This document shows, in pieces, positions 2,028 to 31,985 of a stretch of 64,000 bases of DNA (its first letter is position 1; each line of letters starts with the position of its first letter). The notes beneath the pieces are model-generated. The model was not told where the DNA came from. It saw nothing but the letters and a program-made list of their open reading frames with translations, and did not search any database. Source of the stretch: Lytechinus pictus (Eukaryota). The stretch is taken from positions 30,690,001 through 30,754,000 of the forward strand of contig NC_087249.1 of the NCBI RefSeq assembly GCF_037042905.1, given 5' to 3'. The position numbers were made by a program, and so were the translations under genes.

Positions 2028-2541
2028 AACATCTCTCCATCTCTCAAGTTCCCCCCCCCCTTCTATCTATCTGTCTATCTATCTATCTATCTATCCATCT
2101 CTCTGTCTTTCTCTCTCTCTCTCCCTACTTATATCTATCTATCTATGTCTCTATCTATTTATCAGTCTTCTATATCTATCTTTCGACATCTAAGTGTATC
2201 AATCCATCAAACTTCAATTTTCTTTCTATTGTATGAATCTGTTTATTTTTATTTTGTCTGTCATTCTATTCATTTAGTTAATAATTTATATTTAGACAAA
2301 AAACTTTTTCTTAACTTTTCATAAAAAAAACCTAACTGCAAAAGCATGTTCGGATTTCACTCATATGACTGCTCTCTGTACATGAAATGCTCTGATCAGT
2401 AACAGTGCAGATTGCATGCGGTGGTGTGGGACTCGCCTGTGTCGCACGCTGCAACCAGCGACGTGTGTAGACTCTTCACTAGTCGCTTTGTGGCTATTTT
2501 TGCGGAAAATGCCTTCGCCAGGGTGTAAAACGGAAACGCGC
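90..2541. mobile_element. Non-autonomous Mutator(MULE)-like DNA transposon filled with (TATC)n/(TC)n microsatellite
   Basis: 75-bp TIRs (90-164 and 2467-2541, one mismatch). 9-bp TSD gcgcgggct/ccacgggct. The empty site is visible in copies 2 and 3 (21362, 30913). Superfamily inferred from the long TIR and 9-bp TSD. Confidence 0.8.
420..2180. repeat. Degenerate (TATC)n / (TC)n microsatellite with higher-order repeats
   Basis: Long runs of tatc/ctat. The submotif tatgtaactacagtatctatctatctgttaat recurs about four times. Confidence 0.9.
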
Positions 2542-2565
2542 CCACGGGCTATGCCATGCAGGAAT

Positions 2566-2575
2566 GGGGATTCCC
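2566..2575. promoter_or_regulatory. Consensus NF-kappaB site GGGGATTCCC in PGRP intron 1 (also 21386-21395 and 30937-30946)
   Basis: Matches GGGRNNYYCC and is present in all three copies. A second kB-like site GGGAAATTTTC occurs at 3263, ~22079 and ~31630. Confidence 0.5.
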
Positions 2576-3483
2576 CCAAACAAGGGTAGTGCGTAATCAA
2601 TAGTGGCATACAAACAAACAGTGGTGTACGTCAACACAAGGTTAAGGATATGATCATGGAGCTCTATAGTCCATGATGATAAATGGAATGGTTTTATGCA
2701 GGCAAACTACTGTGTGTGGCTTGTGCACTGAATTCGCTGGAGCGAGGATTGACTTTCCGCACTTACATATAGACATGCACAGAGGTAATACATTTAGATA
2801 AATCAATTATACAACAGTCGTAATATTAACAATGAAACTAAATATCATCATATAAATCACAAATTGACAACATACAAAAATTGTAGTATCTAAAAATATT
2901 GGAAAAAAAAACGGTAAACGAAATATAAATTAAAATATTACAGGATATAAAATTATCTGCGAAATAAAGACAAATTTATGAATTATAATAAAAGCGATAT
3001 TAAGAGAAGTATACATAAAAGGTGCCCCAGAGGTGTTGAGCGAACTCCTGCGTTCATAGATTAATGTTTTTGTTAAAAAAAGAGTGAAGTTTATACTCAC
3101 ATCCTTATTTTGTTTTAATTATGTATTATGAATATGGTGTTTATATTAGTAGGTTATTTTCTATATAATTGCATGCGTAAACACATTTGATATTATGCAC
3201 TGTGTTATATTTTGAACGCAATAATAAAAGCAAAATAAAAAACATTGTTTGATCTGTACGTAGGGAAATTTTCATCAATTGAAATGGTAATAAAGATTTA
3301 ATATCACTTTTCTTCCGTCGAACTGGGCACTATCCTCATGTCACTTTTGGAAGGAGAGGAGAATACTAAGTACATGCATATACAACCTGATGCCATTGAG
3401 GATTTTATGAATGTTTGTGCGAAGTATACATACCACTTCCACTATCGGACAGTTTTCATTGAATTAAAAAGCTCGATACATAC

Positions 3484-3582
3484 CTTCCAGTGTTTGTGAT
3501 CATTCTGAATATCCTTCCTTCCATCACAGATTGCCTTGCAGACGACAAGAATAAGAACTACTGTTAAATTACACTTCCACAT
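3484..3582 (-). CDS. PGRP: PGRP copy 1, first coding exon (signal peptide MWKCNLTVVLILVVCKAICDG...); remaining exons lie left of the window
   Basis: 99-nt ATG-to-AAG|GTATGT exon near-identical to exon 1 of the two complete PGRP copies. Positions 1-80 match the intron-1 sequence just upstream of exon 2 in copy 3 (30833-30912). Confidence 0.8.
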
Positions 3583-6500
3583 AATTTCGCCGATATCAGT
3601 CACAATATGCCGTGTATCATTCATTCAACTAATATGAGCTAGCTAACAGGAATACACAAGAGATTAAACACAAAAGCTGCATTCGTGTCCCCATTCTTCT
3701 CTTTTTCCCTTATATCGAGCATGTTTTATGTTTGTTCAATACTCCCACGATAATTTATCGCAGAGTACTTCCTTTTTAATCTCAAGTTTTTATTTTTGCA
3801 AAGAGAAGCTAAAAAGAGATCTTTAAATAGATCTATGTATGTAATCGAAACTGCAATGTTGTATTCTAATATACTGATTAGCCTAGCACCTGCAGGATCG
3901 TTGGATAGATTTCCATGGCAGCATATAGGCAGGAATCGTTTTCCTATAGGGGGGGGGGTTAAATTACTTAGAATGTTGAAGCATAATAATACGAGCGAGT
4001 GAGCAATGCGGTCGAGCTGATTGCCAAAGTGTGGTTTTGATAATTGAAATGAATGGGTCTGTTTGCACAATATGGGTAACACTTAATGGAAATTTTCGAC
4101 GGAAAGGTAAGTTTGCGAATTTTAAGGGGGGGGGGGCAAAATAATAATTAAAAATCAACATAGCATCAGGCCGACTAGATTATTTTAGATCCTTGTGTTT
4201 TGACAGACGCGGATCACAGGGAGCGGGGTACAATGTATACATAAATCATTCCAAATATTTCCCAGTGGTATGAACTGAGGGAGAGGGGCTGACAGAAAAA
4301 AAATGAGGGGTAACCTTTTCTGGTTTGCATATTTTAGGAGAGAGAGGACAAAGGTTACTGTTGGATGTGATATTAATTTTTTGTCAGTAATTTATATTTA
4401 TAGACACACCCCCTCCTTGACAACATGCATTCGCACTAGTGTCCATGTAAATACAATTTGGTAAAGACTGGAATCGTAATATATTTTTTATGGAAAAAAT
4501 AACATTATATACATTTGATGAAGTGTAAGCAATACAATATAATCTTCGTGTGATATTTTGAAGGTAAGGCACGCATTTATTACGAGTGACTGTTTGTGCC
4601 GAAACGACAATGACGGAAAGTTTATACAGTAGGCCTACATAAATCAGCAAAATAAATATCGTTACTTCTACTGTAATAATATCATAAACATGATAAATAT
4701 AGATGGATTAGGAATGGAATCCAGAATCAAGACATGACAGAAGTGTCTAACAATAATTTTGATTTTTTTCGTCTCTGAGACCCCCCCCCCCATAAGTTTG
4801 TCACTCAAAATGTGTGTCAATTTCTCAAGAATGCAAGGGAAAATGGGTTCGATTGTTAAGGGATTATTTTTTTATAAAAATGTTTTAGAAAACTATAACA
4901 CGGTTAAAGGGGCACTTTAAAAGGGTAGAGAAGCGAGCCAAATTTGGGCTATAAAGGGAGGGGCACAAGCCTTTGCTTATGACATGTATTCAAATTCCAA
5001 ATATTCTATTTTTGCAGGTCTTTTAAGGTATATATAGAGATACGACATAATGCACTGAACTATATTGCAGGCAACAAAGATGGGAGTAATTGAGAAATAA
5101 TAATTTAATTTTGTAGTCTACCAATAACTTTAATTATCTGATGGGCGAGGGGAATATAAAACCAAGGTGGTAATAGTAAATGAACCAATATTGTAAATAA
5201 TGGATAAAGGCATATTGGCAATTACGTAATAATTAATGGAAATGACTGTTTGCTTTTGTGTTTAGATTTAACGTCTTCGCTGAAATGGGGAATTTTTAAA
5301 AACAGTAAAACGTTGGCATTCATACAGTAATGTTTTATAAAATCAGTCAAAAGGGGGGTGAATATGGTAAAGATTTTTGCATTATTCTGGTTGAAAAATA
5401 AGAATGATGAAGAGCTATTAAGTTGCCATTCTGTAATACTCAAATTAGCAATCATATGCATCCATTTTTTATCGACAATAAATGTAAGAAAATCGTCTTT
5501 TCTTGGTTATTGATAAAGATTCAGCGCATAATGGCAGATCCAAGGGGAATGATATCTAAGGAAAGAACAAAGCGCCCCCTCCTGGATTTAATTTCTCTTC
5601 TCAACCAATATTTAAATGCATTTTTCTTTCAACCTTTACGAAAAATACATAAGCTCGATGCAAAATCCATTAATCTCAATAAAAAGTTCGATCCCCATTT
5701 TCGGCCCAGAAACTCGCGACTCTTGCGAAATTTACGTAATTAGCATAATTAGCATAATTCACCATTTTAGAAACTTAAAGGAATCATTGATTATACGGTA
5801 CCCTTTGTGGGTTCTTTTTAGTGCTCAGTTACCTGAGTACAGACTATTTGACAAATAAATTTTCGTCACACTGATCGGGAAATGTTTTTTTTTACCCAAA
5901 AGTACCCAAAATATTCAGCCATCGCCACAATATGGCAAAAATAGCCCCTAAGAATAAAAATGTATTCCTTTCCTGGATCAAGTAAATACATGCATGTAGA
6001 TTTGTAAATGAATTATGACAGCATAATTAAAAAAAATCATGGCATAGATAAGAAAAATTTTAAGAGGAGGCTGCTGATTAGCTAAAAGTCTGATTATCAA
6101 AACATTCTCATTTTCTGCCATTTGGTGCAAGCCTTATTTTTAACCCCTGACAAAAAATGTTCGTGTTCGCTCAAGCACAAACGACACTTGTTGTTCTAAA
6201 AGCATTTAAAGATAAGATTTAAGAGCATCTATTAACATAAAAAATAGACATCATAATTTCAAACAAAATTTTGATAGACTTTTCTGTCTGTCCTGTTTTT
6301 ATTGATACGCACTGTATAATGGAATTAATGAATAATAATTTCTCTATAGATAGAATTCTTAGTCAGATACCATGTATTATTCATCTTATTTCTATCTCAC
6401 TTCCTCTTTCTTTGTTCATTTCTTGTTTTTGTCTGTCTGTTTCTCTCACTCTGTCATGTCTCTGTCTTCTTCCTTACCTTCAAATTCCTCTTTCTTTTCC

Positions 6501-6698
6501 CTGATTTCCTTCATAATCATCTTCTCTTTTCCTACGTTACCCACACCCTCTGTCACACACACACACCTTATCTCTCTCTCTCTACCTCCCTCCCCCTCTC
6601 ATAACCACCCACACCCCACACACTCACGATTCACCGCTCTGTCACTTTCATTTCTCTCCATCTCTCTTTTTCTTTCCCTCTTTCAACATCTAACCCAG

Positions 6699-6858
6699 AT
6701 CCCAAACATCTTGGGTAATATAGGTGGGCTGAAAGGGCCTCTTCACCGGCATGTCATTCATCAGTTTGTTTGAAGTCGCCTTTCTACTGCTACGAGTCAC
6801 AAAAATCACTTTCACCAAACTCTTCATGGCCAACCGAGTGAAGTCGATTGCGACCTGA
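6699..6858 (+). pseudogene. Orphan DEG/ENaC terminal (TM2) exon, frameshifted
   Basis: After a pyrimidine tract and CAG it reads IPNILGNIGGL, then has a +1 insertion (ctg aaagggc ctc vs ctg atgggt ctc). Homologous to 51481-51639. No upstream channel exons were found in the unit. Confidence 0.85.
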
Positions 6859-7578
6859 TAGTACGATCTAAGATGGATGGTTGTACAATATCATTATCAA
6901 ATATATTCATCAACTCGTATTATATATGTAGCATAGCAAAATTTCATATAAAACCTTATTCATTACATTACATAGCTATATATATATACATATTTCCGTA
7001 AATTTTGTTTTAAATAGTGCATTGAAAAGCGAAAGTTGTTGGTTTTATTTGGTGAAGCTTTGAGTCAAACAGTAATATCCTATTGTTATTTGTCATAATT
7101 CTTTATAAAAAGGCCTATTTGTATATTTTCTTTGAATTGAATTTAAGTACCATGGAGATAAAACAGAATTGATAAAAATGCTATATAAATCAAGCTATTA
7201 TTATTATATTTTTTATAAACTCCTATTGCACTAAGTATGACTCTGTGATTTATTTTTTAAGTGTTAATAACTAAACATTTCAAATGATTTCCGATGTCTG
7301 CGTAGGATGGTTTTATTTACAATTTTCATATTGAAAAATCAAATAAATATCATTAAAAAAATTACTCAGGCATACTCTCACGAAGTGTACAGTTTGCAAA
7401 ATATAATTTTTCTATTGATATCAGTCATAATTTGCTAAAGGAGCGAAGCGTTAAGTTTCTGGAGAAAATACATAAGAAAGAAATTCTTTATGTTCTTTGA
7501 TTATTAAATAGTCTGATCGTCGTTACGGAAGTGAACACGATGACCTAAGCCTAGTAAGAAGTTGTATTTTTTTGTCTG

Positions 7579-10500
7579 TCACTGCTTTGGTGGAAAATGG
7601 TCTCCGGGTTTCTGTCGAAAGAAAATGAGAAAATGATAGAAAAGAAAGTTATAAAAAAAATTGAAAATTGAGAATTTTATTCTTTAGAGATAATATTCAT
7701 TGATGATTTTTTTTCCGAATGGAGTGTTATCAATTTCTTAGAGCTGAAATAATTTTGAAAAATCCCAAATTGATTGCTAAAAATCTTTTCATCTACTTTA
7801 TCAAAAATATCATGGATCATTCATCTGCATAAAAGTTCGAATGACAGATTAAATAATGTAACCAGGTGATTAAGGTAAAATAAAAAGTAATGAAGCTACA
7901 TAGACTTCACAATTATTGTTTTTTTTTATCAGATTAGTAAAAAAAAACATCTATTCAAGGTGAATATGAAATGAAATTGCAATTTGTTCAACATTTTGCA
8001 TATCAAATTTGACGTTCCATATTCTTCAGGACGTCAGATGTGTATTAATGTTGGGCAACGTATACTGTCCACTGTTTTGGGTAATGTATGTTGGTGCAAG
8101 ATATAAATATATATTCTCGGCAATTATTATCCAATTGAGCAAATTTATTACCCAATTATTAGTTTGTATTACCCAATTTGGACAGATTTTAACCAATAGT
8201 TATGCGGACAGTATGTTTTTCAGGGTTGGTTAAAATTTGGGCATTTTTGCCCAACTATATATATTAAGAGTGTATCAAAAAGAAAATTCCCCTCCCCACA
8301 ACTATCCTCACAATATTATGGATATATGTGGTATTTGGGGCAGTTATTGTTGTTTTCAGATGGGCTTTGGACATATATCATATACATGGATCATTGTTAG
8401 AATATATATACAGTGCGTCCCAGAAAAAACGAAACCGAGATTTAGCGATGATTTATCATAACTTAATCATAAATAAAATAGACAAATGACCTACCAATGT
8501 AAAGCTTAGAATCTCCTCTTTTATCTGGTATTACTTAGATTATTCCTCATTCACGCATGATTGAGCAAAAACAATTCGAAGAAAGGATGCCAAAAACTCA
8601 TTTGGCGGGGGTATCTGAATTTCAAAAAGAAAATCACATGACTAAAAAGTTCAATATCTTCTCTTTTCTTTGATACCTAAATCACAGAAAATGGTCAAGT
8701 AGTAAAAAAGTTACGATCCCTCGAAACAATGCTTGTATTTCCATAATTTCATTAAATAAACGTGTTTTCACCGGTTTCCCACTGAAGCTATCGCACGGTA
8801 ACAAAAGACTTAATGTATTTTAAAGACGACTCGGCGATTTAAAATTAGTCGGAGAACAATGCCAGGTCATGAAGGTATTTGTAATTTGGAATGGCGCGGT
8901 TGACGAGGTGATACGTCACAATGGAGCGCCAGCCTGTTTGGTTTATGCGCACAATGATAATAATTTGTACTGGGCGCAAGGAGCGCGCATGTTTTGGCGC
9001 GCGCGCCTAGGTGTGAAGGCGCGAAAAATCCTTCATTTTAGTCTTGGCTTTCAACGGAGATGAACGTCCAAAATATTCGCTTGTAATTTTTCTTACGACC
9101 TTGCATTTTTGAAGACGTCGTAATCTACAAAGAACAACGAAATCTACAAGAATTTTTTGTTGAAACCATCATCGATAGGGACTCACAACAATTTCGCTTA
9201 TGAAGCTGAAAATGCAGTCCGAATTACTTGATGATGCTCTATTTCTTGCCTGGCCTAACATTAACAATTATAACTCGTCTGCTTTGACTTTGAACCAAGT
9301 TTAATACGACGGGGAGCGACCGTATCGATTACAGCAGTCAGCAGATCGGCTGGGCCCTAACTTTGAGCTGTTTGGTTTCAGCAACGATGGGAACGAATGA
9401 TGAGAATGTGACTCAAGCTGCTAGGTGGAATTCAGTTCATTCGGCTTTTCATAAGCCTGGAATTTTTATTGAGTCTGAGAGTCTTGTCGTTAACGAGCAG
9501 GATTTGGGACTGGCAACAGCCAACCCAGCCAACAAAACATTTGAGCACGGGCCCTGGCACAAGGTTAGAGACTAGGCCTAGGCCTACATTGGCAACGAAA
9601 TCATGCATAAGTTAGACATTGTCGGCGACGCCATGATACAGTCGACTATGATTCATCATGATCACCCAATGATATGACTATGAGTATTGAATGTTTGTCG
9701 GAAGTCAGAGGTCCTACTCCTGAGGCTGAGTCCGAGCTCTCGAGTCTGCTTGTGGGAGGTGAGGCGACGGTCTGGATTGGCAGACGGAACGGGGAACGGG
9801 GTACTCGTGGTCGGTACCACTACCAGACAATTCACAAGTTCCAGTCTCTACAAGACCTAGCCTATCCGGTGAGTACGAAGCAGGAATAGATCTAGGCTAG
9901 ACTCAGTCTAGATTTAGGTCTACGGTTTAGTGTCAAATAGTATAGGCCTAGTAGGTCTAGGCCTAACGCTAAGCCTATTGATGTAGTGCTAACTTAGTCT
10001 TAGAGTTAGAGTAGAAGTTAGGCTTAAATGAATCGTAGAAGAGGCCTGCTTTGTAACGAGCAGGTAGGCCTGTCTAGGCCTGGCTTTAGATTTCGAACAA
10101 AATCATGTTCTTATTGGTCAGGAGTTAATAGGCTCTGAGTCCTTTTCATTTCAATTTCATGGCCCGTCAACCCCCCCCCCCCGTTTTCACGTTAGAACGC
10201 GAAGATCCTATTACCAACCATAGGCCAGGCATAAGACTAGTTAAGGTAGTCAGGCAAACATGGTTCGATGGGGGGGGGGGGGCTATTTGGCTTGTTAACA
10301 CAATTGGGGTTTAGATTTGAATGTAGGTCATATGTCAAGCCATAATAAGACATAGCCTAGCTTGGACTTGGCCTGGAATTAATTTTAAATTTGGTCCAAG
10401 CGGTTTATACGATCATGATGGAAAAGGGAGGGGTTATCGTCATAATTCAAACACGGGCCTAGGCCTGTTCCTACTTGACGACTTGTTTTAGTGTCTGAAC

Positions 10501-13500
10501 TAGGTCACTAGGTGTGTCATGGTGATTTTTAAAATGAGTTCAACAATTTTATTAACGTTAATTACCGTATCGTATTAGGTGTAGGCCCTAGTTCATGGCT
10601 GTGATTAATATGGATGTAAATACATTTTCACAGCCGGTGGTTTGGAAATTGGGGTTAGTCTCCTCAGTATAGGCTATGCCTACATTGAGGTTCTAAAACT
10701 TCGGCCAGAATCGATGTATATTTACGATGGAAAATCAAAGAAAAATGAAGTCTATAGAGGCCGATATGAAATTGGTTCTAGCATTACAGCTTATTCTAGG
10801 CCTAGTGATGGGCTAGGCTAAAATGTATTTAAGACCATGATTAATTTTAAGCCGCCGTTTTTGGCAAAAATGGTGAGAATAGCAGAGGGTCTACTAGTGA
10901 TTGGCAAAAAGTTCGAATTTTTTCGGTACTGATAAATAACTGAGTTAGAAATGTCACTTTGTCTTTGTTATAAATTTACAAGTAGTCTACTACTAGAACA
11001 GGTACTCGGACTACAATTTAATGGTGACACCACAGAGGAAATTAGGCTAGGTCCAACGTTAGATCTACTTACAGTAGACGCGGTTTTACATGTCTGTTTT
11101 GGGGATAAATCAGCTGGTTCAGTTAGGCCTATAAAAGTAGTATTTGACCTCTGTGACTTTTTCTGGATATTGGCCAGCATGAGCTGTGTTCTCGGTCTAA
11201 AAATTATGTGGATAGACCGGTAGTGGAAGAGCTTATACTAGATATGCATACGTCTAATCAGTTTTTAAATGAACATCTACAGACTGCGACGGGCATGATA
11301 TTATTGTTGAATCAGTCACTTGAAAAGTAGCGGATGTGGCTTAGCATTATGACATGTGATTGTATGGATTTCTTACAGTCTTTTAAAGGAAAATAACTAG
11401 AGTTTATAGTATTGAAAATAATACTATTTATTGCTGATGTTGATGATACAGTGTGATAATGATTATACATTAAATATAAACACCTCCACCTTGCAACAAG
11501 GAGTTCTGTTTATACATTTACGCCTTGAAAGGGGTTGGTTTTTTGGAATTCACTTTGCATGAATTGAATGCCGATGCTTGCTGGAAATGTGAGCTTCACG
11601 TTTCGAGGAAACATGGTACACGTAAAAGTAGACTTACCTTGCACATAATAGTCGGATGTAATTTCGAACTAGCTTGGAATCCCCAAATTAGTTTAGATTG
11701 AAGTCAAGGGGTTCAACGAGCAGTTTGTTATAATATTATAGGCCTCCTAATAAGAAACCTTTATGTAATAGGAGTCGTTTATGTGCGATGATTTTGTGTG
11801 GATTTTATTTTGTGTAAAAGAAATAGAAATGCTTAGGCCCTATTGGAATTGAATTTAATTACTGGTTGTTATATAGCGCTTTATATCAACCTCGAAGTCG
11901 AACTGCTCAAAGCGCTTCACAATTGAACCTAGTTACACCTCATGGTTCAAGGTATGTATCAAATAGGCCTATTTGGCTGGTCAATGATTTGAACTGAGAT
12001 AATATCGATAATATCATTTTAAAAAGAATGATAATTATTATAGATTTGGTATAAATGATCAAGGCGGCAAATAAAATAATAAATAATGAGGAGTTAATTC
12101 CTGGAAGGCATTGAGTGTAAATGGGCATGTGTGGGAAAGTCTGAAATCTTGTAGATGCACCATGCTGTCATTCCCCCTTTGCTTTCGGGGGACACAATAC
12201 GGATGCCTTTAATGCAATAAGCCATGTAGGTAAACTGGCCAATCAAACGAAATTTACCGATTGCACAATCAGGAACCAGGTTACAAAAGTACATCTTCTT
12301 TTTTGGAATTGTACAGCGTGTGAAATATTTTGTTGGTGGCCCGTTGAGTATGAAAATGTTTCCAATGGGCTGGATGCAATAATTTGGCTCGATTATTTCT
12401 GCAGTGATATAGAGGTAAACTGAATACTGAAATAATAATGATAATATATTTCAAAATAATAACAGTTATAGTCATTTGGAACAGATTATTTGAAGCTTAA
12501 TCTGGTTTTGAAATATTGTCTAAGTTGCGACACGCACATGTATGCAGATGATATTGCATCGCTGGTTGGGGTTGTACTGTAGGGAATTGGAAAATTAAAG
12601 TTAAAAATGAAACATAAGGAGCAGGACTACTGATTATTCCGTGAAGGCGGTTTTCAGACGTTTCGGGAAGCTGCTCCTTTCGTGTTAAGCTCATAATTGA
12701 GTGATAAATTGAAAGGGAAAGCAGAGGGACAAACCCGTTTTGGTACGAGATACAGATTTAGGTGTTCTGCCCAGGCTTTTTTCTTGTTTTCTTTTGCAGA
12801 GTCGGCTCTTTGGATAAAATGGATTCAAGCTGACTACTGCGAGGCAAGGTAGGCTGGCAGGAAAGTTTGATGACAATTGGACCTACTATAGTATGACCTA
12901 GAACGCTCCAAGTCTGGCTGCAAAGAGTTTCCCTTTGGTTGGATCTAGTTCCTGACCAGATAGCCTAGAGTCCATGGTAATGGATGTCAATTTTGGCGTT
13001 AATACGCTCTTGTAATAAATAGAAATGAACTGGGTATAGCCTGAGAACTATGCTGCCGGAAATTACCGTAATTGGAGCAGTGGTCAACGTCTTCATCTAA
13101 ATAATTTACCGACAGGTGTGGATTTATAATACGTAGTCCAAGGAATAGAGGTTTTCTTCAGTAAAAAAAACTGGTGAACAAACATCTTAGCCTTCAAGGA
13201 ACAGTATTGCAGCAGGGAAAACAATTTCATGTTTGAAACATCATGATACAGTGGGCTATCTTGAATAATGAGTCCATGATATGAGGATGAGTTCATTATG
13301 ATTTCATTTTCAGACTTTTTATTAGGTCCTCCACATTGTTCACTTGGAAGGGATTGGAACTTGAACATATGAAGAAACCCCTTTGCCTCTTTGTGCTTTT
13401 GCCAACAAGAATGTAACATATTGTTCAGGACAAATATATATATATATATATGGATGTATAAATGTATAAGGCACTTCAAATTTTATTCATTATCCTTTGA

Positions 13501-16500
13501 AGGACTACTCGTCGGATGTTATTTTATTTTTGAAATAAACAATTATTTCATGGATGTGGTGAAGATGATAAGACAAAAAGTCAGTCATGTTTTACGTCGA
13601 TATGTGAATACATAATCAAAAAATGAAACATCCCCGGTAAAATTCCAGTTTATGTTCACTGGTTCTTAGTTTAGCTGCATGAGGAGTGTAGCTCTAACGG
13701 AGTAGTCCTGATCGGGAAGGTTTCATGTTCAAATTGGTTTTAGTGCCTTCAATTATCATGGTTATACTCTATTGGTTATATGGGGTTATTCTGTGGATGT
13801 TACTCTAGTTTTCAGTTTCAGTTTTTATTTTATCTCATTTCCAACAGAACAGTATTCAAAATCCATTATAACTCAGGAATGGTATGATGTGTGTTTGTTG
13901 GCATTAAGAGTGAGGTGACTAACTAAATGCTGTGGTTGGATTTTAATTGATCGATTGTCCACAATTGAATCATATGGGTGCATGGAGTTAAGTCATGCAC
14001 TGTTATAATTATATGGCAAATGGGACAACAAGAAAGTGGCAGTACCTCAGTGCGGCATGCATTGTTGGTTTAGCTATGTTGGGATGCTAGTATGTGTTAA
14101 CTATATGGTCAAACTGATGGCTTTCGGCCATCTAATTGGTTTTAGTGCCTTCAGTTATCATGGTTATACTCCATTGGTAATATGAGGTTATTCTGTGGAT
14201 GTTACTCAAGTTTTCAGTTTCAGATTTTATCTTATCTCATTTCCAACAGAACAGTATATAAAATCCATAAAAAATACTAATAATGAAAAAATGAATAAAA
14301 TAAAATTACAACTCAGAATGGTATGATATGTACCGTATTTGTTGGAATTAAGTGTGAAGTGACTAGCTAAATGCCGTGTTTGGTTTTTATCGATCGATTG
14401 TCCACAATTGAATTATTTGTGTGCATAGGGTTAAATTATGCACTGTTATACATGTATGGCAAATGGGACAACAAGACAGAGGCAGTACCTCAGTGCGGCA
14501 TGCATTGCTAGTTTAGCAATGTTGGGATGCCAGTATTTGTTAATTATATGGTCAAGCTGAAGGCGTTCAGCCACCATTGATAACTTATCAAAATTAGTGA
14601 TGCAATGAATTTCAATTTTGAAGATTGCAATAGATTTGTATCAAAATCATGATACTTCAAATGGCATATTATCTTGTCTTCCTTCATATGTTTTGTTTAG
14701 TTTTGCGCATGGTAATCAGATTTTAATTGTGAATGAAGTTCTGACATGGTTATGTTTTAATGTATTTCTATTGGGAGATTTTTCCAACAGCTGAATACAT
14801 TGAAGTGTTTTTCATGCTCTCATTATACTTGAGATGGATATTTGTTCATATACTTGAATTGAATTTTTCTATCTGGTTTTGGAATGCAATAAGTGAAATA
14901 TTCAGGTGCAAAGTATTTGTCATTTCATGCTGGTTTAAAACGGGCTGGTATGTTGGTCAAGAATAGAAAACAGGTATACTGCATATAAAATGATCACTCT
15001 TATATCAGCCAGAATAGCTAGAGGCAAAGAATGCCAGCCTTCAGGTAACTGTGTCATGTAAGACAGCGACGTCAAGGCTGTACAAAGATTTTATACAAAG
15101 ATGATATATTTTAAATTCATTTAAAATTATTGGAGGGCTTGGAGGCCTACTTGACTACATATGCATGATAACTGATTTAGCTTGGCCAGCTGATGCAAAA
15201 CTAGACTAAATTATGAACGAAGGCTTAACAAATGAATGAAGTGTTTGGCGGCCGATCATATATATAAAATATATTCTCGTTTGGCGGTAATTTGTCAAAT
15301 TATGCCGCCTAAACACTGTTGTCATAAGATATATTGGCATGGCATATGTTCTTTAATCCACAATGGTCACTTTTGCAAGGTGTTTAAAGCAGTGAATTAT
15401 ATTTTCGCCTCTAGTTATTAGATTTTCCACTTTGATGCCATGTACGTTGATTAATATTTCATATTGAATCGGGTCCTCATTCGGTACCTAGACGAAGGGG
15501 ATTTATTTATAACTTTACATAGTACTTTAAGAACGCAATTGTAGATTTGAATGTAAGGGTGTCACGCTCGAACTTTCAGTTTAGGCCTCACCTGATCTCA
15601 TAGGCGGGGAGGCTGGTATTCTGTATACATTTATATTTTATGTAAGGGTGTCACGCTCGAACTTTCAGTTTAGGCCTCACCTGATCTCATAGGCGGGGAG
15701 GCTGGTATTCTGTATACATTTATATTTTTCGTGAAATTTAGGCCTCACCCAATTTCTCATGCGGGAAGGCTGGTATATATATATGTATATTATATGATAT
15801 AAGTATGACATCTGTAATCCACCGATTTGCCGGTAGCTCATAAATGTAGTTCATAGCTGTGCTGGTATTCCTGTCCGGCTAGCAGAGAACCAGTGGGAAA
15901 GCAGCCGCGAAATTTAACGTTGAATTTTCTGGGAGGGGGGCCTTCTAGCCGGGGGTTTAACCCCCCTTCGGGGAGCTAATTCGAGGCTATCGGTTGGTTT
16001 CAGATATACATGAATGTAAGTCTCTAATCAGAGGTATTCATATCCATGTTTTATACTTATGTGATTGTGACACCAATTTCGGGAAGCGTTCATCTCTATT
16101 GAATAAAGCCACGACATAATCGCATATTATTTTGTTTTGTCATTTTTGTTTGCCGAGAATAATGTATTTTAAAGACGACTCGGCGATTTAAAATGATTTA
16201 TTAGTCGGAGAACAATGCCAGGTCATGAAGGTATTTGTAATTTGGAATGGCGCGGTTGACGAGGTGATACGTCACAATGGAGCGCCAGCCTGTTTGGTTT
16301 ATGCGCACAATGATAATAATTTGTACTGGGCGCAAGGAGCGCGCATGTTTTGGCGCGCGCGCCTAGGTGTGAAGGCGCGAAAAATCCTTCATTTTAGTCT
16401 TGGCTTTCAACGGAGATGAACGTCCAAAATATTCGCTTGTAATTTTCCCACCTCCTCCCCAACAACCACCCATGTAAACGGTACGTTTGGGTCAAACGAT

Positions 16501-19500
16501 GTTGGAATATTGTTTAAACACATGCGTTGGAGAAGGTCGAGAATGAAGATACGCTATACGTATCATTCAGAGTTGATTTGTGTTTTATTGGAATGTACAG
16601 CTCGTTCAGAATGGAATAACGGGATGTAGAGCTGTCGATAATGGACATTTGAATTAGTTTACTTACATTAATATAATATTGATTTATATAACGAAACACG
16701 AATTCAAATCCGGAGGCAGTTTGCCTGGTCGCACACCAAAACAATACAAAGATCGTCGTGCATTTAGAAATGTGGGCCGTAAGGGAATTTTATCCTTCTG
16801 AACTATTTTGGACTGTGGTCAGGTGGGTTTTCGCCCTTACCCGTTTTTGTGGCTGGGTGTTCGTTATATATTGGTAATTCACATGAATTGTATTGTCTTA
16901 TTATTGACATGGCATATGTTCTTTAATCCACAATGGTCACTTTTGCAAAGTGTTTAAAGCAGTGAATTATATTTTCGCCTCTAGTTATTAGATTTTCCAC
17001 TTTGATGCCATGTACGTTGATTAATATTTCATATTGAATCGGGTCCTCATTCGGTACCTAGACGAAGGGGATTTATTTATAACTTTACATAGTACTTTAA
17101 GAACGCAATTGTAGATTTGAATGTAAGGGTGTCACGCTCGAACTTTCAGTTTAGGCCTCACCTGATCTCATAGGCGGGGAGGCTGGTATTCTGTATACAT
17201 TTATATTTTATGTAAGGGTGTCACGCTCGAACTTTCAGTTTAGGCCTCACCTGATCTCATAGGCGGGGAGGCTGGTATTCTGTATACATTTATATTTTTC
17301 GTGAAATTTAGGCCTCACCCAATTTCTCATGCGGGAAGGCTGGTATATATATATATGTATATTATATGATATAAGTATGACATCTGTAATCCACCGATTT
17401 GCCGGTAGCTCATAAATGTAGTTCATAGCTGTGCTGGTATTCCTGTCCGGCTAGCAGAGAACCAGTGGGAAAGCAGCCGCGAAATTTAACGTTGAATTTT
17501 CTGGGAGGGGGGCCTTCTAGCCGGGGGTTTAACCCCCCTTCGGGGAGCTAATTCGAGGCTATCGGTTGGTTTCAGATATACATGAATGTAAGTCTCTAAT
17601 CAGAGGTATTCATATCCATGTTTTATACTTATGTGATTGTGACACCAATTTCGGGAAGCGTTCATCTCTATTGAATAAAGCCACGACATAATCGCATATT
17701 ATTTTGTTTTGTCATTTTTGTTTGCCGAGAATAATGCATGGCTAAGCGTCAACAAAACGGAGTGTCGAGTGAGTTTGAACGCTATCCTGTAAAACCTCTT
17801 CATTTTATGAAATTATTGAAATTCAAGCCTTATTTCAAATAACCAGAACTTTGTTATTTCTTGACCATTTTCTGTAATTGAGGTATCAAATTAAAAAGCA
17901 GATATTGAACTTTTTAAAAATGTGGTTTTCTTTTTAAAACCCAGATACGGCCCGCCAAGTGACTTTTCGGTATTCCCTTTTCAAATTGTTTTTGCTCACT
18001 CATGCGTGAATGAGAAATAATCTAAGTAATTTCAGATGAAAGAGGAGATTCTAAGCTTAAAATGGTAGGTCATTTGTCTATTGTATTTGCGATTAAGTTA
18101 TGATAAATCATCGATAAATCTCGGTTTCGTTTTTTGTGGGACGCACTGTATAGGAGTTTGAGTAATTAACTTCAAGTTGTGTGTATTTTTTCAACAAATC
18201 GTAGGTAAGTTCATAGTTTTTACGAACCTGATTTTTTTCTCTTAGAGAGTATATAATCACTTGAAAATCAAGAATATTACTGTACGTAATCCATTTAAAC
18301 ATCATTGTGGAGTAATTCCTTATCCTTTTGTACAAAGATGAGCTTGAATAATTAAGACAAGTACGTGATCAACTTAATTTCTTACCCAGTGAGGCCAAGT
18401 TTGGATCATGTCAAAAAGAGCCTGGCCTGGGCAGGTCCTGTTTGGAGTAGCTTGGCGATGACCATAGAGAATGTAGTCAGACTTGAGTTTATTGCTATAA
18501 AATGTGATTGAGAAAGAGGGGCAGAGATGGGGTGGGAAGTAGAGGAGGGGGGGGGGGGGGTTGGGGTGGTGTCAAAGTAAGAGGTAGAATGCAATATGCG
18601 AAAATATGTAAAATACGTGAGAAAGCTATCAGTTAAAATCCTTCGTTCATTGCCTTACTGCGGACGGAGGAGGCAGGCGCAGTTGATCCCCGCTTTTTTT
18701 ATTTTTACATTTCTCAAAAATCTAGTGTGACCAAGATCCGTTCTTTTCAACTTGAAAACACATCCCCAAAAGGAGACCAACCGCCTTCTGTGTTACAGGC
18801 ATATCCCTCCACAAGCTCTTGCTTTTGAGGAATTACGCCTTCTTCTGTTTAACAAATCTTATTTATATTTCTACTCTTTTATGACAAATGATTTTATACA
18901 GATTATAATGAAAAATGATATTTTGTGAAAATAGAAGAAAATAAATGTTTATTCGAATTGAATTAAATTACATTAGGGAGGAGCCAGGATTTTCCAAAAG
19001 TGGGGTGCACATTTTCCCGAGGAAAATTTGACAAGCGAAAAAAAGCTTTTCACCCAAATTTTAAGTCATTTTGTCCACTGAAAATTTGACAAGCAAAAAA
19101 ACAAACAAACAAAAAAGGTTTTCACCCCAAATTCAAGGTCATTTCGTCCACGGAAAATTTGACGAGCAAAAAAAACGTCCTCACTTAAAAAAAAGGGGGC
19201 ACACTTGGGTTAGAACGGCATTTACATTACAAATTTTGATTATGCCTCTCAAAAGGGGGGCACGGGCCGGATGTGCCCCCCCCCCCCCACGGGATCCGCC
19301 ACTGAATTGCATATAGGTACTACTACTACTCATCTATTTGTTTTGCATATTGGAGACTCACTTTACAATGGCACAGTTAATGATTTCATCGACAGCTTCT
19401 ATTGCCTTCTGGTTCGGAAGCTTCGTTGTAAAATTACCCATGATAGATATGCCTTCAAAAGAAAGAGAAAACAGGGACGGTATATAAATCAATATGATGA

Positions 19501-19679
19501 GATAATAGTATTCCACATAATAATTGCAATATACCCTACACCCATCACCACTTAAAAAACATCATAAAAAATCATAATCATCACCACCACCATCTCCATC
19601 ATCAGCATCATCATCATCACTGCCATCATCGTCATCATCATTATCAAAATAAAATCTTCACCAATATACAACAACACAA

Positions 19680-19740
<61 letters not shown>

Positions 19741-22404
19741 GCTGCTGCTACTACTACTACTATACTACTNNNNNNNNNNNNNNNNNNNNNNNNNNNNNNN
19801 NNNNNNNNNNNNNNNNNNNNNNNNNNNNNNNNNNNNNNNNNNNNNNNNNNNNNNNNNNNNNNNNNNNNNNNNNNNNNNNNNNNNNNNNNNNNNNNNNNNN
19901 NNNNNNNNNNNNNNNNNNNNNNNNNNNNNNNNNNNNNNNNNNNNNNNNNNNNNNNNNNNNNNNNNNNNNNNNNNNNNNNNNNNTGTCTTCATAATCATTG
20001 TCATCATCACCACCATCACCACAAACAACGTCATATTCACACGATCTCCATCACCATCACCCTGTTAACAATCATCCACATCATAGACCTACCTAATGAT
20101 CTGAAGTTATACCAGGGTGCATGACTACCCACGGTGTCCCATCCTCGACCTCTGTATACCAAACCGTCTTCACCGACCAGGAAGGAATATGCGATGTCGT
20201 TCCATCCCCTGACGTCCATGTGGAAATCCTGAACGAGATCGAAATAATTCAAGAATACATCCGAGACCAACACATTAAACTTCAATTATAATACTTGTAT
20301 GTAATATGATAACAATTACATTTCATTTCAGATCAATTCGAGGTGTAAACTGAATTGTACAAATCATTTCAGAAAAAGACACGATGAACATTTTTGTAGC
20401 AATATGAATTCACATAAAATAAAAAGTGAGCCACTCTTGTAAAAGCGTGTCCTTATAATGATACATTTGGCTCAAAATGTGCAACTATGCGGACGAATTA
20501 GCCCACTTTTGCGCGAGTGACTCACTTTGTTTACACTTGATTAATGAATTTCATTCTTGTTTAAGAATGATTGTCCCTGTTGAAAGAAGGGCGGAGGGGG
20601 GGGGGAGAAGGAGCAATTTACCTGTATGGATCGCATCATCTTACAGCATTCGTCAAAGGTAAAGCATTCTGGCGTATCGGTGTGATGTAATATCACAAAG
20701 GGAACCGGAGTTTCCATGTCTGACCTATCCTTGGCAGGTCGAGCACCCCACTCTTCGCGGGTTATAACCCTTGGACACGCCTTGACTGTGAATTCTATAA
20801 TATACAAAATGGGGGCTCGTGATGAAGCCCTTTTTCAATATGGGATGAATAACGAGCTGAATGGTCAAAGAACTTATCTAGTCTGGTTTGTTGGAATTGT
20901 TTTCATTAATTTCTGGACGTCATCGCATATGGTGTAGGCCGTAACATTTTAAATGTATGTCTCACAAAATATTATCAATGATCTTAAATTAGACTGTTAT
21001 TGTTATAGCTTAAACGTGATTATTTTGGATTGAATTTTAAAGTGGGATCACATTTGACATGAAAGATAAGCTTCCCTCGTACTCATACTGTCTAATACAG
21101 TGGATGATTTCATGAAATAATCAAGTGAAACAGAATATGCCTACATAATTCATAAGAGATGGAAAACTTACCAACTGAATCCATCAATCTCCCACCGTCG
21201 ATATCTGCCTGGAGTTGTAAAATGAATAATAACAAAATGACGTAACGAAGATAAAAATTCAGACTCCAGTTTCTAATAATCAATGATCTGTACTTAATAC
21301 AAGCCTTTATAGATGTGGCTTTAGATAAACATCATTCTATTCAGCGATAGAGATTGCTATTCCCCGGGCTATGCCATGCAGGAATGGGGATTCCCCCAAA
21401 CAAGGGTAGTGCGTAATCAATAGTGGAATACAAACAAACAGTGGTGTACGTCAACACAAGGTGAAGGATATGATCACGGAGCTATATAGCTCCATGATGA
21501 TAAATGGAATGGTTTTATGCAGGCAAACTACTGTGTGTGGCTTGTGCACTGAATTCGCTGGAGCGAGGATTGACTTTCTGCACTTACATATATACATGCA
21601 CAGAGGTAATACATTTAGATAAATCAATTATACGACAGTCGTAATATTAACAATGAAACTAAATATCATCATATAAATCACAAATTAATAACATACAAAA
21701 ATTGTAGTACCTAAAAATATTGAAAAAAAAAACGGTTAACGAAATATAAATTAAAATATCACAGGATATAAAATCATCTGCGAAATAAAGACAAATTTAT
21801 GAATTATCATAAAAGCGATATAAAGAGGAGCATACATAAAAGTTGCCCCAGAGGTGTTGAGCGAACTCCTGCGTTCATAGATTAATGTTTTTGTTAAAAA
21901 AAGAGTAAAGTTTATACTCACATCCTTATTTTGTTTTAATTATGTATTATGAATATGTTGTTTATATTAGTAGGTTATTTTATATATTGCATGCGTAGAC
22001 ACATTTGATATTATGTACTGTGTTATGTTGAACGCAATAATGAAAGCAAAATAAAAAACATTGTTTCATCTGTACGTAGGGAAATTTTCATCAATTGAAG
22101 TGGTAATAAAGATGTAATATCACCTTCCTTCCGTCAAACTAGGCACTATCCTCATGTCACTTTTGGAAGGAGAGGAGAATACTAAGTACATTCATATACA
22201 ACCTGATGCCATTGAGGAATTTATGAATGTTTGTGCGAAGTATACATACCACTTCCATTATCGGACAGTTTTCATTCAAATGAAAAGCTCGATACATACC
22301 TTCCAGTGCATGTGTTTGTGATCATTCTGAATATCCTTCCTTCCATCACAGATTGCCTTGCAGACGACAAGAATAAGAACTACTGTTAAATTACACTTCC
22401 ACAT
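7579..22404 (-). CDS. PGRP: Secreted amidase-type peptidoglycan recognition protein (PGRP copy 2), 7 exons, ~224 aa
   Basis: Exons 22404-22300, 21208-21172, 20785-20622, 20228-20093, 19452-19362, 18494-18386, 7611-7579; all GT-AG and phase-consistent. Signal peptide, then CPRVITREEWGA, VILHHT, RGWNDIAYSFLVGEDGLVYRGRGW, GISIMGNF, YGHRQ, TCPG, WPHWKPG. The Zn/catalytic residues His, Tyr, His and Cys are present. Confidence 0.9.
13733..14575. repeat. Diverged ~400-bp tandem duplication inside the split-repeat element
   Basis: aattggttttagtgccttca...ttcggcca at ~13733-14130 is repeated at ~14134-14575 with substitutions and a ~35-bp AT-rich insert. Confidence 0.85.
15551..15775. repeat. 89-bp tandem repeat (two copies plus a partial third) in repeat B1; also present in B2 at ~17121-17345
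   Basis: atgtaagggtgtcacgctcgaactttcagtttaggcctcacctgatctcataggcggggaggctggtattctgtatacatttatatttt occurs twice exactly. Confidence 0.9.
18974..19304. mobile_element. hAT-type MITE in PGRP intron 5 (family also at 28444-28769, ~41958-42382, 59567-59859)
   Basis: Ends ...ggatccgccactg. 8-bp TSD aattacat/aattgcat. Shared internal gaaaatttgacaagc repeats. Confidence 0.7.
19560..20060. repeat. (CAT)n/(CTA)n microsatellite with assembly gap (N 19770-19983)
   Basis: Directly visible. The same intron is gapped in copy 3. Confidence 0.9.
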
Positions 22405-25400
22405 AATTTCGCCAATATCAGTTTCAACAAGTCACAATTATGCCGTGTATCATTCATATGAGCTAGCTAACAGGAATACACAAGAGGTTAAACACAAAAG
22501 CTGCATTCATATTCCCCATTCTTCCCTTTGCATGTTATGTTTGTTCAATACTCCCGCGATAATTTAGCGCAGAGTACTTCGTTTTTAATCCCAGGTTTCT
22601 ATTTTTGCAAAGAGAAGCTAAAAGGGAAGAATACAGAAAGCTTTAAATAGATCTATCTATGTAATCGAAACTGCAATGTTGTATTATTCGATCCAAATAT
22701 CCTGATTAGCCTAGCACCTGCAGGATCGTTGGATAGATTTCCATGGCCGTGTATAGGCAGGAATCGTTTTCCTATAAGGGGGGGGGGGGAAATTACTTAG
22801 AATGTTGAAGCATAATGATACGAGCGAGTGAGCAATGCGGTCGAGCTGATTGCAAAATGTGGTTTGAATAATTGAAATGAATTTCAATTTTCATTTCTTT
22901 ATTCCATTTCCTTTCAAAACATAGTACAAAGTAATATAAATCAGATACAAATTTACAGACGAGCATTCTTACTTCGTAAAATGAATGGGTCTGTTTGCAT
23001 AATATGGGTTACACTTCATGGACATTTTCGACAGAAAGGTAAGTTTGCAAATTTAAGGGGGGCAAAATAATAATTAAAAAATCAACATAGCATCAGGCCG
23101 ACTAGATTCTGGTTTGCATATTTTAGGAGAGAGAGAGAACAAAAGTGATTGTTGGATGTAATATTCAATTTTTCTTGTCAGTAATTTATATTTATAGCCA
23201 CACCCCCGCCTTCTGACATCTTGCATTCGCACTAGTGTCCGAGTGAATCCAATTTGGTAAAGACTCTAATCGTAGTATTATATTTTTCATGGAAGAAAAT
23301 AACATTATATACATTATTTTGATGAAGTGAAAGCAATATAATATAATCTACATGTGATATTTTGAAAGTAATGCACGCATTTATTACGAGTGACTGTTTG
23401 TGCCGACATGATGACAATGACAGAAAATTTACTTTATAGTAGGCCTACATAAATCAGCAAAATAAATATCGTTATTTCTACTGTAATAATATCATAAACA
23501 TGATAAATGTAGATGGATTAGGAATGGAATCCAAAATCAAGACATGAAAGACGTGTCTAACAATAATTTTGATTTTTTTTTTCGTCTCTGACACCCCCCA
23601 CATAAGTTTGCCACTCAAAAAGTGTGTCAATTTTTTTTAAGAATGCAAGGGAAAATGGGTTCCATTGCCAAAAAGGGATGACATTTTTATAAAAATGTTT
23701 TAGAAGAGTAAATCACGCGGTTAAAAGTGTTACTTAAAAGGAGCAGAACAGCGAGTCTAATTTGGGCTAAGGGGTAGAGGGCATAAGCCTAAATCCTTTG
23801 CTTATGACATTTATGCAAATTCCAAATATATACACTTTTGCAGGTCTATAAAGCTACATGTAGGTATTAATAGAGATGCGACATAATCGCACTGAACTAT
23901 ATTGCCAGCAACGAAGATGGGGGTAATACCGACGAAACAATGTAATTGAGAAATAATGATATGATTTTGCAGTCTACCAATAACCTTAATTATCTGATGG
24001 GTGTGGGGGATATAATATCAAGGTAGTAAATGAACGAATATTGACAAGAATGGACATATATATGCATATTGGCAATTACGTAATAATTAATGGAAATGAC
24101 TATTTGCTTTTGTTTTTAGATTTAACGTCTTCACTGAAATGGGGAATTTTAAAAACAGTAAAACGTTGGCATTCATGCAGTAATGTTTTATAAAATCAGT
24201 CAAAAAGGGGGTGAATATGGTAAAGATTTTTTTATTATTCTGGTTGAAAAATAAGAATGATGAAGAGCTATTAAGTTGCCATTCTGTAATACTCATATTA
24301 GCAATCATATGCATCCATTTTTATCGACAATAAATGTAAGAAAATCATATTTTCTTGATTATTGATAAAGATTGAGCGCATAATGGCAGATCCAAGGGGA
24401 ATGATATCTAAGGAAAGAACAAAGCGCCCCCTCCTGGATCTAATTGATCTTCTCGATCAATATTTAAATGCCTTTTTCTTTCAAACTTTTCGAAAAATAC
24501 ATGTATATTTAAGCTCGATGCAAAATCCATTAATCTCAATAAAAAGTTCGATCCCCATTTTCGGTCCAGAAACTCGCGACTCGTGCGAAATTTGCGTAAT
24601 TAGCATAATTAGCATAATTCACCATTTTAGAAACCAAAGGAAACTTTGAACCCTTTATAGGTTCTTTTTATTGCCCAGTTAGCTGAGTACAGACTATTTG
24701 ACAAATAAATTTTCGTCACACTGATCGGGAATCTTTTTTTTTTTACACAAAAGTACCTTAAATATTCAGCCATCGCCACAATATGGCAAAAATAGCCCCT
24801 AAGAATAAAAATGTATTCCTTTCCTGGATCAAGTAAATAAATGCATGTAGATTTGTAAATGAATTTTGAAAGCATAATAACAAAAAAATAATGGCATAGA
24901 TGAGAAAAAATTTAAGAGGAGGCTGCTGATTAGCTAAAAGTCTGATTATCAATACATTCTTATTTTCTGCCAATTGGTGCAAGCCTTTTTTTAACCCCTG
25001 ACAAAAACTTTTCGTGTTCGCTCAAGCATGAACGAAACTTGTTGTTCTAAAAGCATTTAAAGATAAGATTTAAGAGCATCTATTAACATAAAAAAAAATT
25101 GACATCATAATTTCAAACAAAATTCTGATAGACTTTTCTAAACTGTCCTGTTTTTATTGATACGCACTGTATAATGGAATTAATGAATAATAATTTCTCT
25201 ATAGATAGAATTCTTAGTCAGATACCATGTATTATTCATCTTATTTCTATCGCACTTCCTCTTTCTTTGTTCATTTCTTGTTTTTGTCTGTCTGTTTCTC
25301 TCACTCTGTCATGTCTCTGTCTTCTTCCTTACCTTCAAATTCCTCTTTCTTTTCCCTGATTTCCTTCATAATCATCTTCTCTCTTCCTACGTTACCCACA

Positions 25401-25563
25401 CCCTCTGTCACACACACACACCTTATCTCTCTCTCTCTCTCTCTCTACCTCCCTCCCCCTCTCATAACCACCCACACCCCACACACTCACTATTCACCGC
25501 TCTGTCACTTTCATTTCTCTCCATCTCTTCTCTTCTCTCTCTCTCTTTCAACATCTACCCCAG

Positions 25564-25722
25564 ATCCCAAATATCTTGGGTAATATAGGTGGGCTGATGG
25601 GTCTCTTCACCGGCATGTCATTCATCAGTTTGTTTGAAGTCGCATTTCTACTGCTACGAGTCACAAAAATCACTTTCACCAAACTCTTCATGGCCAACCG
25701 AGTGAAGTCGATTGCGACCTGA
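25564..25722 (+). pseudogene. Orphan DEG/ENaC terminal (TM2) exon, intact frame
   Basis: 159-nt exon IPNILGNIGGLMGLFTGMSFISLFEVAFLLLRVTKITFTKLFMANRVKSIAT*, same length and phase as the last exon of channel gene 1. Confidence 0.88.
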
Positions 25723-26785
25723 TAGTACGATCTAAGATGGATGGTTGTGCAAGATCATTGTTAATAATAAAGATAATAGTACTCATAATATTATTGAAAA
25801 ACACGTTATTAACCAGTATTTGTACCAATGATATACCATGAATATATATATTCGATTTTTTTGTTGCAGTATTAATTCGATTTGTTTGCCAGTGGTGAGT
25901 ATAGCAATATGCATGCCTCATGACTTAATGTTTTTAGAAGATGAAAAATTCTACCAAACAAAGCAGAGAGAAGAGAGACTTGAGAATAAAATTGTTTTAA
26001 TTTGATTTTTTATTTTGACAGTTTTGACATTACGCAAACATAATCAGTTTTAAATTTTACGAATTACTATATTAAAAAATTGACAGAATATGTATTCACT
26101 GAAAAGTAAAAAAAAATATATATATTCATCAACTCGTATTATATATGTAGTATAGCAAAATTTCATATAAAACCTTATTCATTACATAGCTATATCATAT
26201 TTCCGTAAATTTTGTTTTAAATAGTGCATTTAAAAGCGAAAGTTGTTGGTTTTATTTGGTGCAGCTTTGAGTCAAACAGTAATATCTTATTGTTATTTGT
26301 CATAATTCTTTATAAAAAGGCCTATTTGTATATTTTCTTTAAATTGAATTCAAGTACCATGGAGATAAAACAGAATTGATAAAAATGCTATATAAATCAA
26401 GCTATTATTATTATATTTTTTATAAACTCCTATTGCACTAAGTATGACTCTGTGATTTATTTTTAAAGTGTTAATAACTAAAAATTTCAAATGATTTCCG
26501 ATGTCTGCGTAGGATGGTTTTATTTACAATTTTCTTATTGAAAGTCAATAAATATCAGTAAAAAAAATACTCAGGCATACTCTCACGAAGTGTACAGTTT
26601 GCAAAATATAATTTTTCTATTGATATCAGTCATAATTTGCTAAAGGAGAGAAGCGTTAAGTTTCTGGAGAAAATACATAAGAAAGAAATTCTTTATGTTC
26701 TTTGATTATTAAATAGTCTGATCGTCGTTACGGAAGTGAACACGATGACCTAAGCCTAATAAGAAGTTGTATTTTTTTTTGTCTG

Positions 26786-31949: not shown

Positions 31950-31985
31950 AATTTCGCAGATATCAGTTTCAACAAGTCACAATAT

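Follow-up and report, generated by a model that had tools for sequence, protein, structure and literature searches.

The window analysed here is a 64,000-nucleotide stretch of Lytechinus pictus DNA (NCBI RefSeq assembly GCF_037042905.1, contig NC_087249.1, positions 30,690,001 to 30,754,000 of the forward strand), and at positions 8811-17731 of this window lies an 8.9-kb element that a sequence-only reading had described as a recently mobile split-direct-repeat retroelement of Ngaro/PAT type. Using repeat finding and direct reading of the sequence, we resolved the element, on the + strand, into repeat A1 (8811..9090, 280 nt), a non-coding interior of 6.2 kb (9091..15337), repeat B1 (15338..16159, 822 nt), repeat A2 (16160..16446, 287 nt), which B1 adjoins directly, a unique piece of 461 bp that occurs once per element and is here called x (16447..16907), and repeat B2 (16908..17731, 824 nt). 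The A1-B1-A2-B2 layout and the repeat differences were as the sequence-only reading had given them, with x the one part it left unnamed. Between A1 and A2 the sole difference is a 7-bp indel, with no substitution; B1 and B2 are distinguished by a single substitution (G at 15379, A at 16949) and by one TA within a (TA)n run. The 7 bp missing from A1 were retained in all 19 other A1 copies read, so the deletion is private to this copy. The pentamer TAATG stands at 8811, at 16160 and at 17732, i.e., at both outer boundaries and at the internal joint between B1 and A2. This joint reads GAGAA-TAA-TGTA (16155..16166, + strand) and is the proposed image of a circle junction and recombination site. 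As shown below, the element is one young copy of a gene-less mobile family with about 50 members.

The element splits a host miniature inverted-repeat transposable element (MITE) of ~820 bp, whose left arm lies at 8407..8810 and right arm at 17737-18152 (no strand assigned). Its long inverted arms are 80-93% complementary and its ends read TACAGTGCGTCCC...; with ~2000 candidate copies in the genome at 99% identity, this MITE must be very young. MITE sequence was also plentiful in RNA reads, on both strands. When the two flanks were joined around a single TAATG, 40 or more other MITE copies matched the resulting 65-mer over its full length without interruption (97-98% identity), which shows that the insertion was exact and bears out the earlier claim that removing the element restores a continuous MITE. 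RNA reads from intact MITEs carry the same single-TAATG joint (seen as loose read ends at 17732). No intact sister MITE was present in the window or in the loci read, and the empty site was established genome-wide instead. A paralogous sister unit at 26120-29203, 93-95% identical to the flanks, does lack the element, as had been noted, but it lacks the whole MITE too; the order of events was thus duplication, then MITE insertion, then insertion of the element.

The MITE and its inserted element occupy, in the first unit, the place at which the sister unit shows ...GAATATA-TTTATAA-GAGTTTGAG... (27618-27626). Both units belong to a tandem segmental duplication with a unit of several kilobases, 88-95% identical, which relates 4000-8406, 23107-27618 and 32985-34946 to one another, and 18153-23000 to 27626-31983 and 2541-4054. 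Runs of N, either gaps or masked stretches, occur outside the element at 19770-19983, 29207-29393 and 29412-29555; within 8811-17731 there is none.

A family of about fifty copies and its insertion signature

Genome searches covered the 812-Mb assembly with a 30-mer from the start of A, a 30-mer from the end of B and a 23-mer across the B|A junction, allowing up to 3 mismatches and using reversed patterns as controls. The A-start and B-end 30-mers gave 129 and 123 matches, respectively, and their reversed controls none. The internal junction was matched 49 times genome-wide (47 exact, 2 with one mismatch), and these junctions divide about evenly into a GAGAA-TAA type, to which the copy at 8811 belongs, and a GAGTA-TAA type. 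Among the first 100 A-start matches listed, at least 38 A1-A2 pairs were found, nearly always spaced 7.2-7.4 kb apart. The complete 6.5-kb stretch from A1 to B1 recurs at 93-99% identity at 13 or more other places, and in two pieces at ~10 more. A family copy lies at C5:19146778-19155518. All flanks read at other loci (19 left, 27 right) were unrelated to each other and to those of the 8811 copy. The repeat order A1...B1A2...B2 was present in all 21 paired copies that were read. With 49 junctions genome-wide and ~50 copies in unrelated flanks, the prospect that no other copy would share these ends and this layout, which the sequence-only reading had named as fatal to its proposal, did not materialise.

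The interior of the GAGTA sublineage is homologous to that of the 8811 copy, at 76-90% identity by BLAST and with many indels. An interior length of ~6.2 kb is kept from one sublineage to another, with 88-93% conservation in the second half. This better-conserved half contains a local tandem duplication of ~420 bp at 13729-14573 (+ strand), made of two direct-repeat pairs of ~140-200 bp, spaced 400-440 bp apart and 87-92% identical. Besides complete copies, the genome holds solo A-x-B units of 1.57 kb (L024, L025, L027 and at least six more judged by spacing), A-interior-B units, and a copy at C12:3045364-3055948 (L020, L021, L041) that reads A1-interior-B-A-x-B-A-x-B and so has one surplus A-x-B unit. 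All of these are products expected from recombination between direct repeats; for the surplus unit, the origin was either unequal crossing-over or an A-x-B circle that integrated into a resident joint. Where examined, oversized copies (8-15 kb) always comprised the usual interior plus nested insertions.

Three further observations concern individual copies and the distribution of the family. Nested in the interior of another copy on C12 (L054:3125-6572) is a 3.4-kb unidentified repeat whose longest stop-free stretch is 165 aa. At C15:24484704-24487237, two variant joints (GCCGAAAATAATG...) stand 2.5 kb apart on opposite strands, which may represent a rearranged or inverted family copy. Finally, runs X5-X7, which carry a second species label (organism B), contain just 5-6% of the interior's sampled words; in the form seen here the family appears confined to a single species, and any relatives in organism B would be diverged ones.

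To define the insertion signature, we compared 20 left ends (19 besides the 8811 copy) and 30 outer right ends (from 27 loci besides the window's own). The right end reads GAGAA- or GAGTA-TAA in 30/30 cases, and the bases that follow the TAA vary. The left end reads TAA-TG in 18 of the 20 copies and TAT-TG in the other two, while TAA is present at every internal junction. We also considered TAATG as a 5-bp target-site duplication and rejected it, as the left and right 5-mers were unlike in 11 of the 18 copies with both ends available. Thus, TAATG is present at all three boundaries of the 8811 copy, as first noted, but it is not fixed: the invariant shared sequence is TAA, and TAATG is merely its preferred extended form. 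Since the right TAA never varies and the left one does, the pattern suggests that the right TAA (17732..17734, + strand, in the 8811 copy) comes from the element and the left TAA (8811..8813, + strand) from the target.

Reconstruction of the targets of the same 18 copies revealed an A at position -1 in 15/18 (p=1e-5), a T at +1 in 10/18, and a G at +2 in 10/18 (p=3e-4). The preferred target, A-TAA-TG, therefore repeats all six bases of the joint within the element. Copies of the family thus show no target-site duplication, and a short family-specific sequence is common to the junction and both flanks. In DIRS-like elements, the circle junction and the two flanks share a family-specific terminal trinucleotide, TTT in Xenopus and GTT in others (bioRxiv 10.1101/2021.08.05.455354, PMC7192593), and the TAA pattern matches this published rule.

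Concerted repeats, a gene-less interior and rival explanations

The repeats within a copy proved far more alike than the repeats of different copies. Across the 21 paired copies, A1 and A2 of the same copy differed at 2/5954 positions and B1 and B2 at 6/14778, whereas A differed between copies by 1.9% on average and by up to 6%. At 17 variable A sites, all 357 copy-by-site cells had the same base in A1 and A2. Similarly, three copies of the GAGTA type show no difference between B1 and B2 over their last 700 nt, yet depart from the B of the 8811 copy at 22 of 733 sites. B also contains an 89-bp unit, present as two perfect tandem copies in B1 of the 8811 element (15551..15728, + strand; B2 counterpart 17121-17298), and the number of these units (one or two) is always equal in B1 and B2 of a copy. 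The within-copy repeat divergence of ~0.04% indicates that the copies are young, in line with the recent movement originally proposed. Such full-length concerted change fits a mechanism by which terminal repeats would be regenerated from one template, as with long terminal repeats (LTRs), and would be unexpected for cut-and-paste of double-stranded DNA. Gene conversion could have contributed to the equality of the repeats.

We prefer a retro-mechanism, mainly on the indirect ground that the A and B pairs change in concert over their full length, and we put at about 75% the probability that these are young, multi-copy, non-autonomous split-direct-repeat retroelements of the tyrosine-recombinase kind (DIRS order: Ngaro/PAT/VIPER-type). 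The Ngaro/PAT-like layout recognised at the outset is reinforced by the repeat order in 21/21 paired copies and by an insertion signature characteristic of tyrosine-recombinase retroelements.

The alternative that survives best is a non-autonomous element mobilised at the DNA level, in which a tyrosine recombinase would cut out a double-stranded circle and reinsert it without any reverse transcription, in the style of Cryptons or integrative circles. A recombinase, of which the genome holds many frames, would be enough to explain the junction-like target and the TAA microhomology on either flank, and no transcript starts or ends were mapped. Such a process, however, would not restore the match within the A pair and within the B pair in each lineage, and the concerted state of 357/357 cells is at odds with it; the existence of ~50 copies, the young ones near-identical, likewise suggests copy-and-paste. 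Cryptons lie between short direct repeats derived from target microhomology and by definition have no long terminal repeats (PMC13465315). The family does present a TAA microhomology, but it also has long split repeats that change in concert, and we consider DNA-level movement unlikely.

The longest stop-free stretch in the interior of the 8811 copy is 129 aa; mononucleotide shuffles of the interior gave 108 +/- 18 aa, and 12% of them reached 129. In other copies, the longest stretches are 130-161 aa. Pfam found nothing in the ten longest interior pieces, and a wider run on both strands, over all 117 stop-free pieces that reach 36 aa, returned chance-level matches only, none to a reverse transcriptase (RT), RNase H, integrase, recombinase or gag. 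Rfam (E<=1, 8300-18300) gave no match to a known ribozyme or other RNA family. Substitutions between sublineages showed no three-base periodicity, the maximal chi-square of ~7 among ~125 windows being at chance level. The earlier statement that the interior has no gag, RT or recombinase ORF thus holds. As the element encodes neither RT/RNase H nor a tyrosine recombinase, it can be classed only as a non-autonomous derivative.

Could the element nonetheless code through spliced exons or short proteins, rather than being purely parasitic? The constant interior length and the 88-93% conservation of its second half would agree with this, and the RNA data are thin. Even so, stop-free stretches at random expectation, the lack of relevant domains in the 117 pieces, the missing codon periodicity alongside many indels between sublineages, and the absence of splice joints in the RNA reads render a coding function very improbable.

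Slightly less probable still, and largely refuted, is a large retrotransposon derivative (LARD)-like descendant of an LTR retrotransposon, with rearranged LTRs and inserted by a DDE integrase. The family does resemble one in being large, non-coding and multi-copy, with long direct repeats that are identical within an element, and the 89-bp tandem units in B recall the enhancer repeats of LTRs. LARDs, like terminal-repeat retrotransposons in miniature (TRIMs), should terminate in the same LTR on either side, with TG...CA termini and a varied duplication of 4-6 bp. Here the element has A at its left end and B, a different repeat, at its right end, x is present only once, the termini are TG...AA, and in place of a varied 4-6 bp duplication there is a fixed TAA that also occurs at the internal joint. 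By reading, the sequence adjoining the repeats contained no polypurine tract and no TGG-type primer site. As for an assembly artefact or a segmental duplication, only the general risk attached to repeats speaks for it, and the recurrence of the layout at ~50 places with unrelated flanks, the exact empty site and the absence of N from the element reduce its probability to a negligible level.

A proposed replication cycle and the evidence against it

How might a gene-less tyrosine-recombinase retroelement move? We infer an RNA intermediate, a circle, a recombinase and a supply of enzymes in trans, the enzymes probably being borrowed from another element. The element would be transcribed, and some coding element would lend the reverse transcriptase that turns the transcript into DNA. 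In this step, the terminal A and B would be rebuilt from the internal ones, with the B1|A2 joint dictating how the ends meet. The product would then close to a circle with a new B|A joint, ...GAGAA-TAA-TG..., and a tyrosine recombinase supplied in trans would cross this joint with a genomic TAA, preferably within A-TAA-TG. After such an exchange, the insertion would have a single TAA at either side and no target-site duplication. The open tyrosine-recombinase frames of the genome could be the source of this enzyme: the phage-integrase family PF00589 has at least 83 matches there, many of them in open frames of ~330 aa.

Several lines of evidence weigh against this retroelement cycle, beginning with the missing partner. 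We searched for one through the A-start, B-end and junction patterns (up to 3 mismatches), through PF00589 genome-wide and through the spacing of A/B pairs, scoring the best candidates only. Among the best candidates scored, none was a coding element that shared the ends or the junction of the family; none of the 83 PF00589 matches listed lies inside a copy bounded by A and B; and all 49 junction-bearing copies are gene-less, judged by spacing or sequence. Nor was there any related junction above control, as matches with 2-3 mismatches numbered 10 against a control total of 12. Given these results and the finding that oversized copies contain only nested insertions, no partner can be named; one whose ends have diverged may yet exist. 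The autonomous partner sharing the A and B ends that the sequence-only reading called for was thus absent from the assembly as searched, and it is still by reasoning that we infer mobilisation in trans.

Secondly, if a circle carried two equal joints, permuted copies (A-x-B-A-interior-B) would be expected; none was found among the 100 A-start matches listed, and this absence is unexplained by the standard model. Thirdly, the RNA data are sparse and ambiguous. In stranded, ribo-depleted RNA, reads covered B1-A2-x-B2 at a depth of 2-18 in 2/3 runs. These reads carry variants of the GAGTA sublineage, whose interior is less than 95% identical to that of the 8811 copy and hence went unmapped here. 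With first mates on the + strand, the reads would represent - strand RNA if the library is of the commonest type. A few reads continue into a flank, and all may equally stem from host read-through of one copy. The sparse reads over B1-A2-x-B2 revealed no RNA starts, ends or splice joints. A further run, X1, labelled 'RNA?', was DNA-like, with a MITE depth 100-fold that of the element.

Within the repeats, some candidate RNA signals are present. On the + strand, an AATAAA at 16102..16107, 53 nt before the end of B1 (B2 counterpart 17674-17679), would be a putative poly(A) signal if this strand were the RNA. On the - strand, an AATAAA, read as TTTATT at 16197-16202, lies ~40 nt from where A2 begins, so that poly(A)-type signals appear to fit either orientation. 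A G+C-rich stretch of B1 at 15800..16010 (B2 counterpart ~17372-17582) is predicted to fold well as + strand RNA (minimum free energy -79.2 kcal/mol, z -3.3), and less so as - strand RNA (-61.3, z -2.1). Among 7 variants of this B fold there were no compensatory pairs, and three wobble-preserving changes stood against three breaking ones.

Relation to known systems and significance

Non-autonomous elements of this order are already known, i.e., TOC1 and SIRE. A large gene-less family of the tyrosine-recombinase order in an animal was not reported in the full-text literature searched, whose coverage is incomplete and leaves Repbase outside. More tentatively, the family may represent a purely non-coding lineage that has lasted long enough to divide into three or more sublineages, all gene-less and only 76-90% alike in their interiors, each still yielding near-identical copies, and with ends and a junction common to no coding element. 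Were this true, a heterologous recombinase and RT would recognise the family only via the A-TAA-TG core and/or RNA structure in the repeats, amounting to a SINE (short interspersed nuclear element)- or LARD-like parasitism as yet undescribed among animal elements of the DIRS order. The family would also offer a natural system for reading the cis requirements of the replication cycle from conservation alone, and its importance would be greater if the partner were an unrelated element.

The replication and integration of tyrosine-recombinase retroelements are still largely a paper model (PMC7192593). In ~50 young gene-less copies, every conserved base must act in cis; the joint and the target (A-TAA-TG) can be read directly, and both repeat pairs have been re-equalised over their full length in every lineage. 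The absence of permuted copies among the A-start matches listed, in turn, constrains which joint serves integration. For genome annotation, the family amounts to ~0.4 Mb that protein-based repeat classifiers would probably leave unclassified.

Ngaro elements have the layout A1-[ORFs]-B1A2B2 (PMC8547959, PMC4157794), isolated AB repeats have been reported for them (PMC8547959), Pat1-like elements include an echinoderm form (PMC4157794), and both Ngaro and Pat1-like elements are reported from sea urchins (PMC8547959, PMC4157794). The family shares with them the split-direct-repeat order, a long segment from A1 to B1, isolated AB units and the lack of a target-site duplication. It differs from them in having no gag, RT/RNase H or recombinase genes and in carrying the 461-bp x between A2 and B2. 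As internal repeats stand at different places in PAT forms (PMC4157794), a unique segment between A2 and B2 falls within the known range. Ngaro elements lack a methyltransferase-like domain that PAT elements possess, and RT/recombinase phylogeny also separates the two; they are not distinguishable here, because the element has no protein to classify. With DIRS-like elements, the family has in common one family-specific trinucleotide at the circle junction and both flanks; those elements, however, have inverted repeats and an internal complementary region, whereas the family has split direct repeats, TAA and an A-TAA-TG target.

SIRE of Trypanosoma cruzi is a short non-autonomous or solo A2-B2 derivative of VIPER (PMC6681497). 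Like the family's 1.57-kb solo A-x-B units, it is gene-less and made of split-repeat A and B parts, but it measures ~0.4 kb and consists of A2-B2 alone, while the family keeps the four-repeat layout and a 6.2-kb interior.

At the level of lifestyle, the family can be likened to LARDs, which are large non-coding derivatives of LTR retrotransposons: in both, a long non-coding interior lies between functional ends, amplified by borrowed enzymes, and the two differ in end structure and insertion chemistry. TOC1 of the green alga Chlamydomonas, ~5.7 kb long and without a long ORF, probably depends on the PAT-like TOC3. It has been termed an active nonautonomous DIRS retrotransposon (PMC9940879). 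TOC1 and the family are alike in being mobile and multi-copy, in measuring several kilobases, in having the split terminal repeats of tyrosine-recombinase retroelements, and in lacking enzymes of their own. The two differ in host (alga versus animal) and in sequence, and a coding relative is known for TOC1, whereas none was found for the family. Unlike TOC1, moreover, the family has split into sublineages, all of them gene-less.

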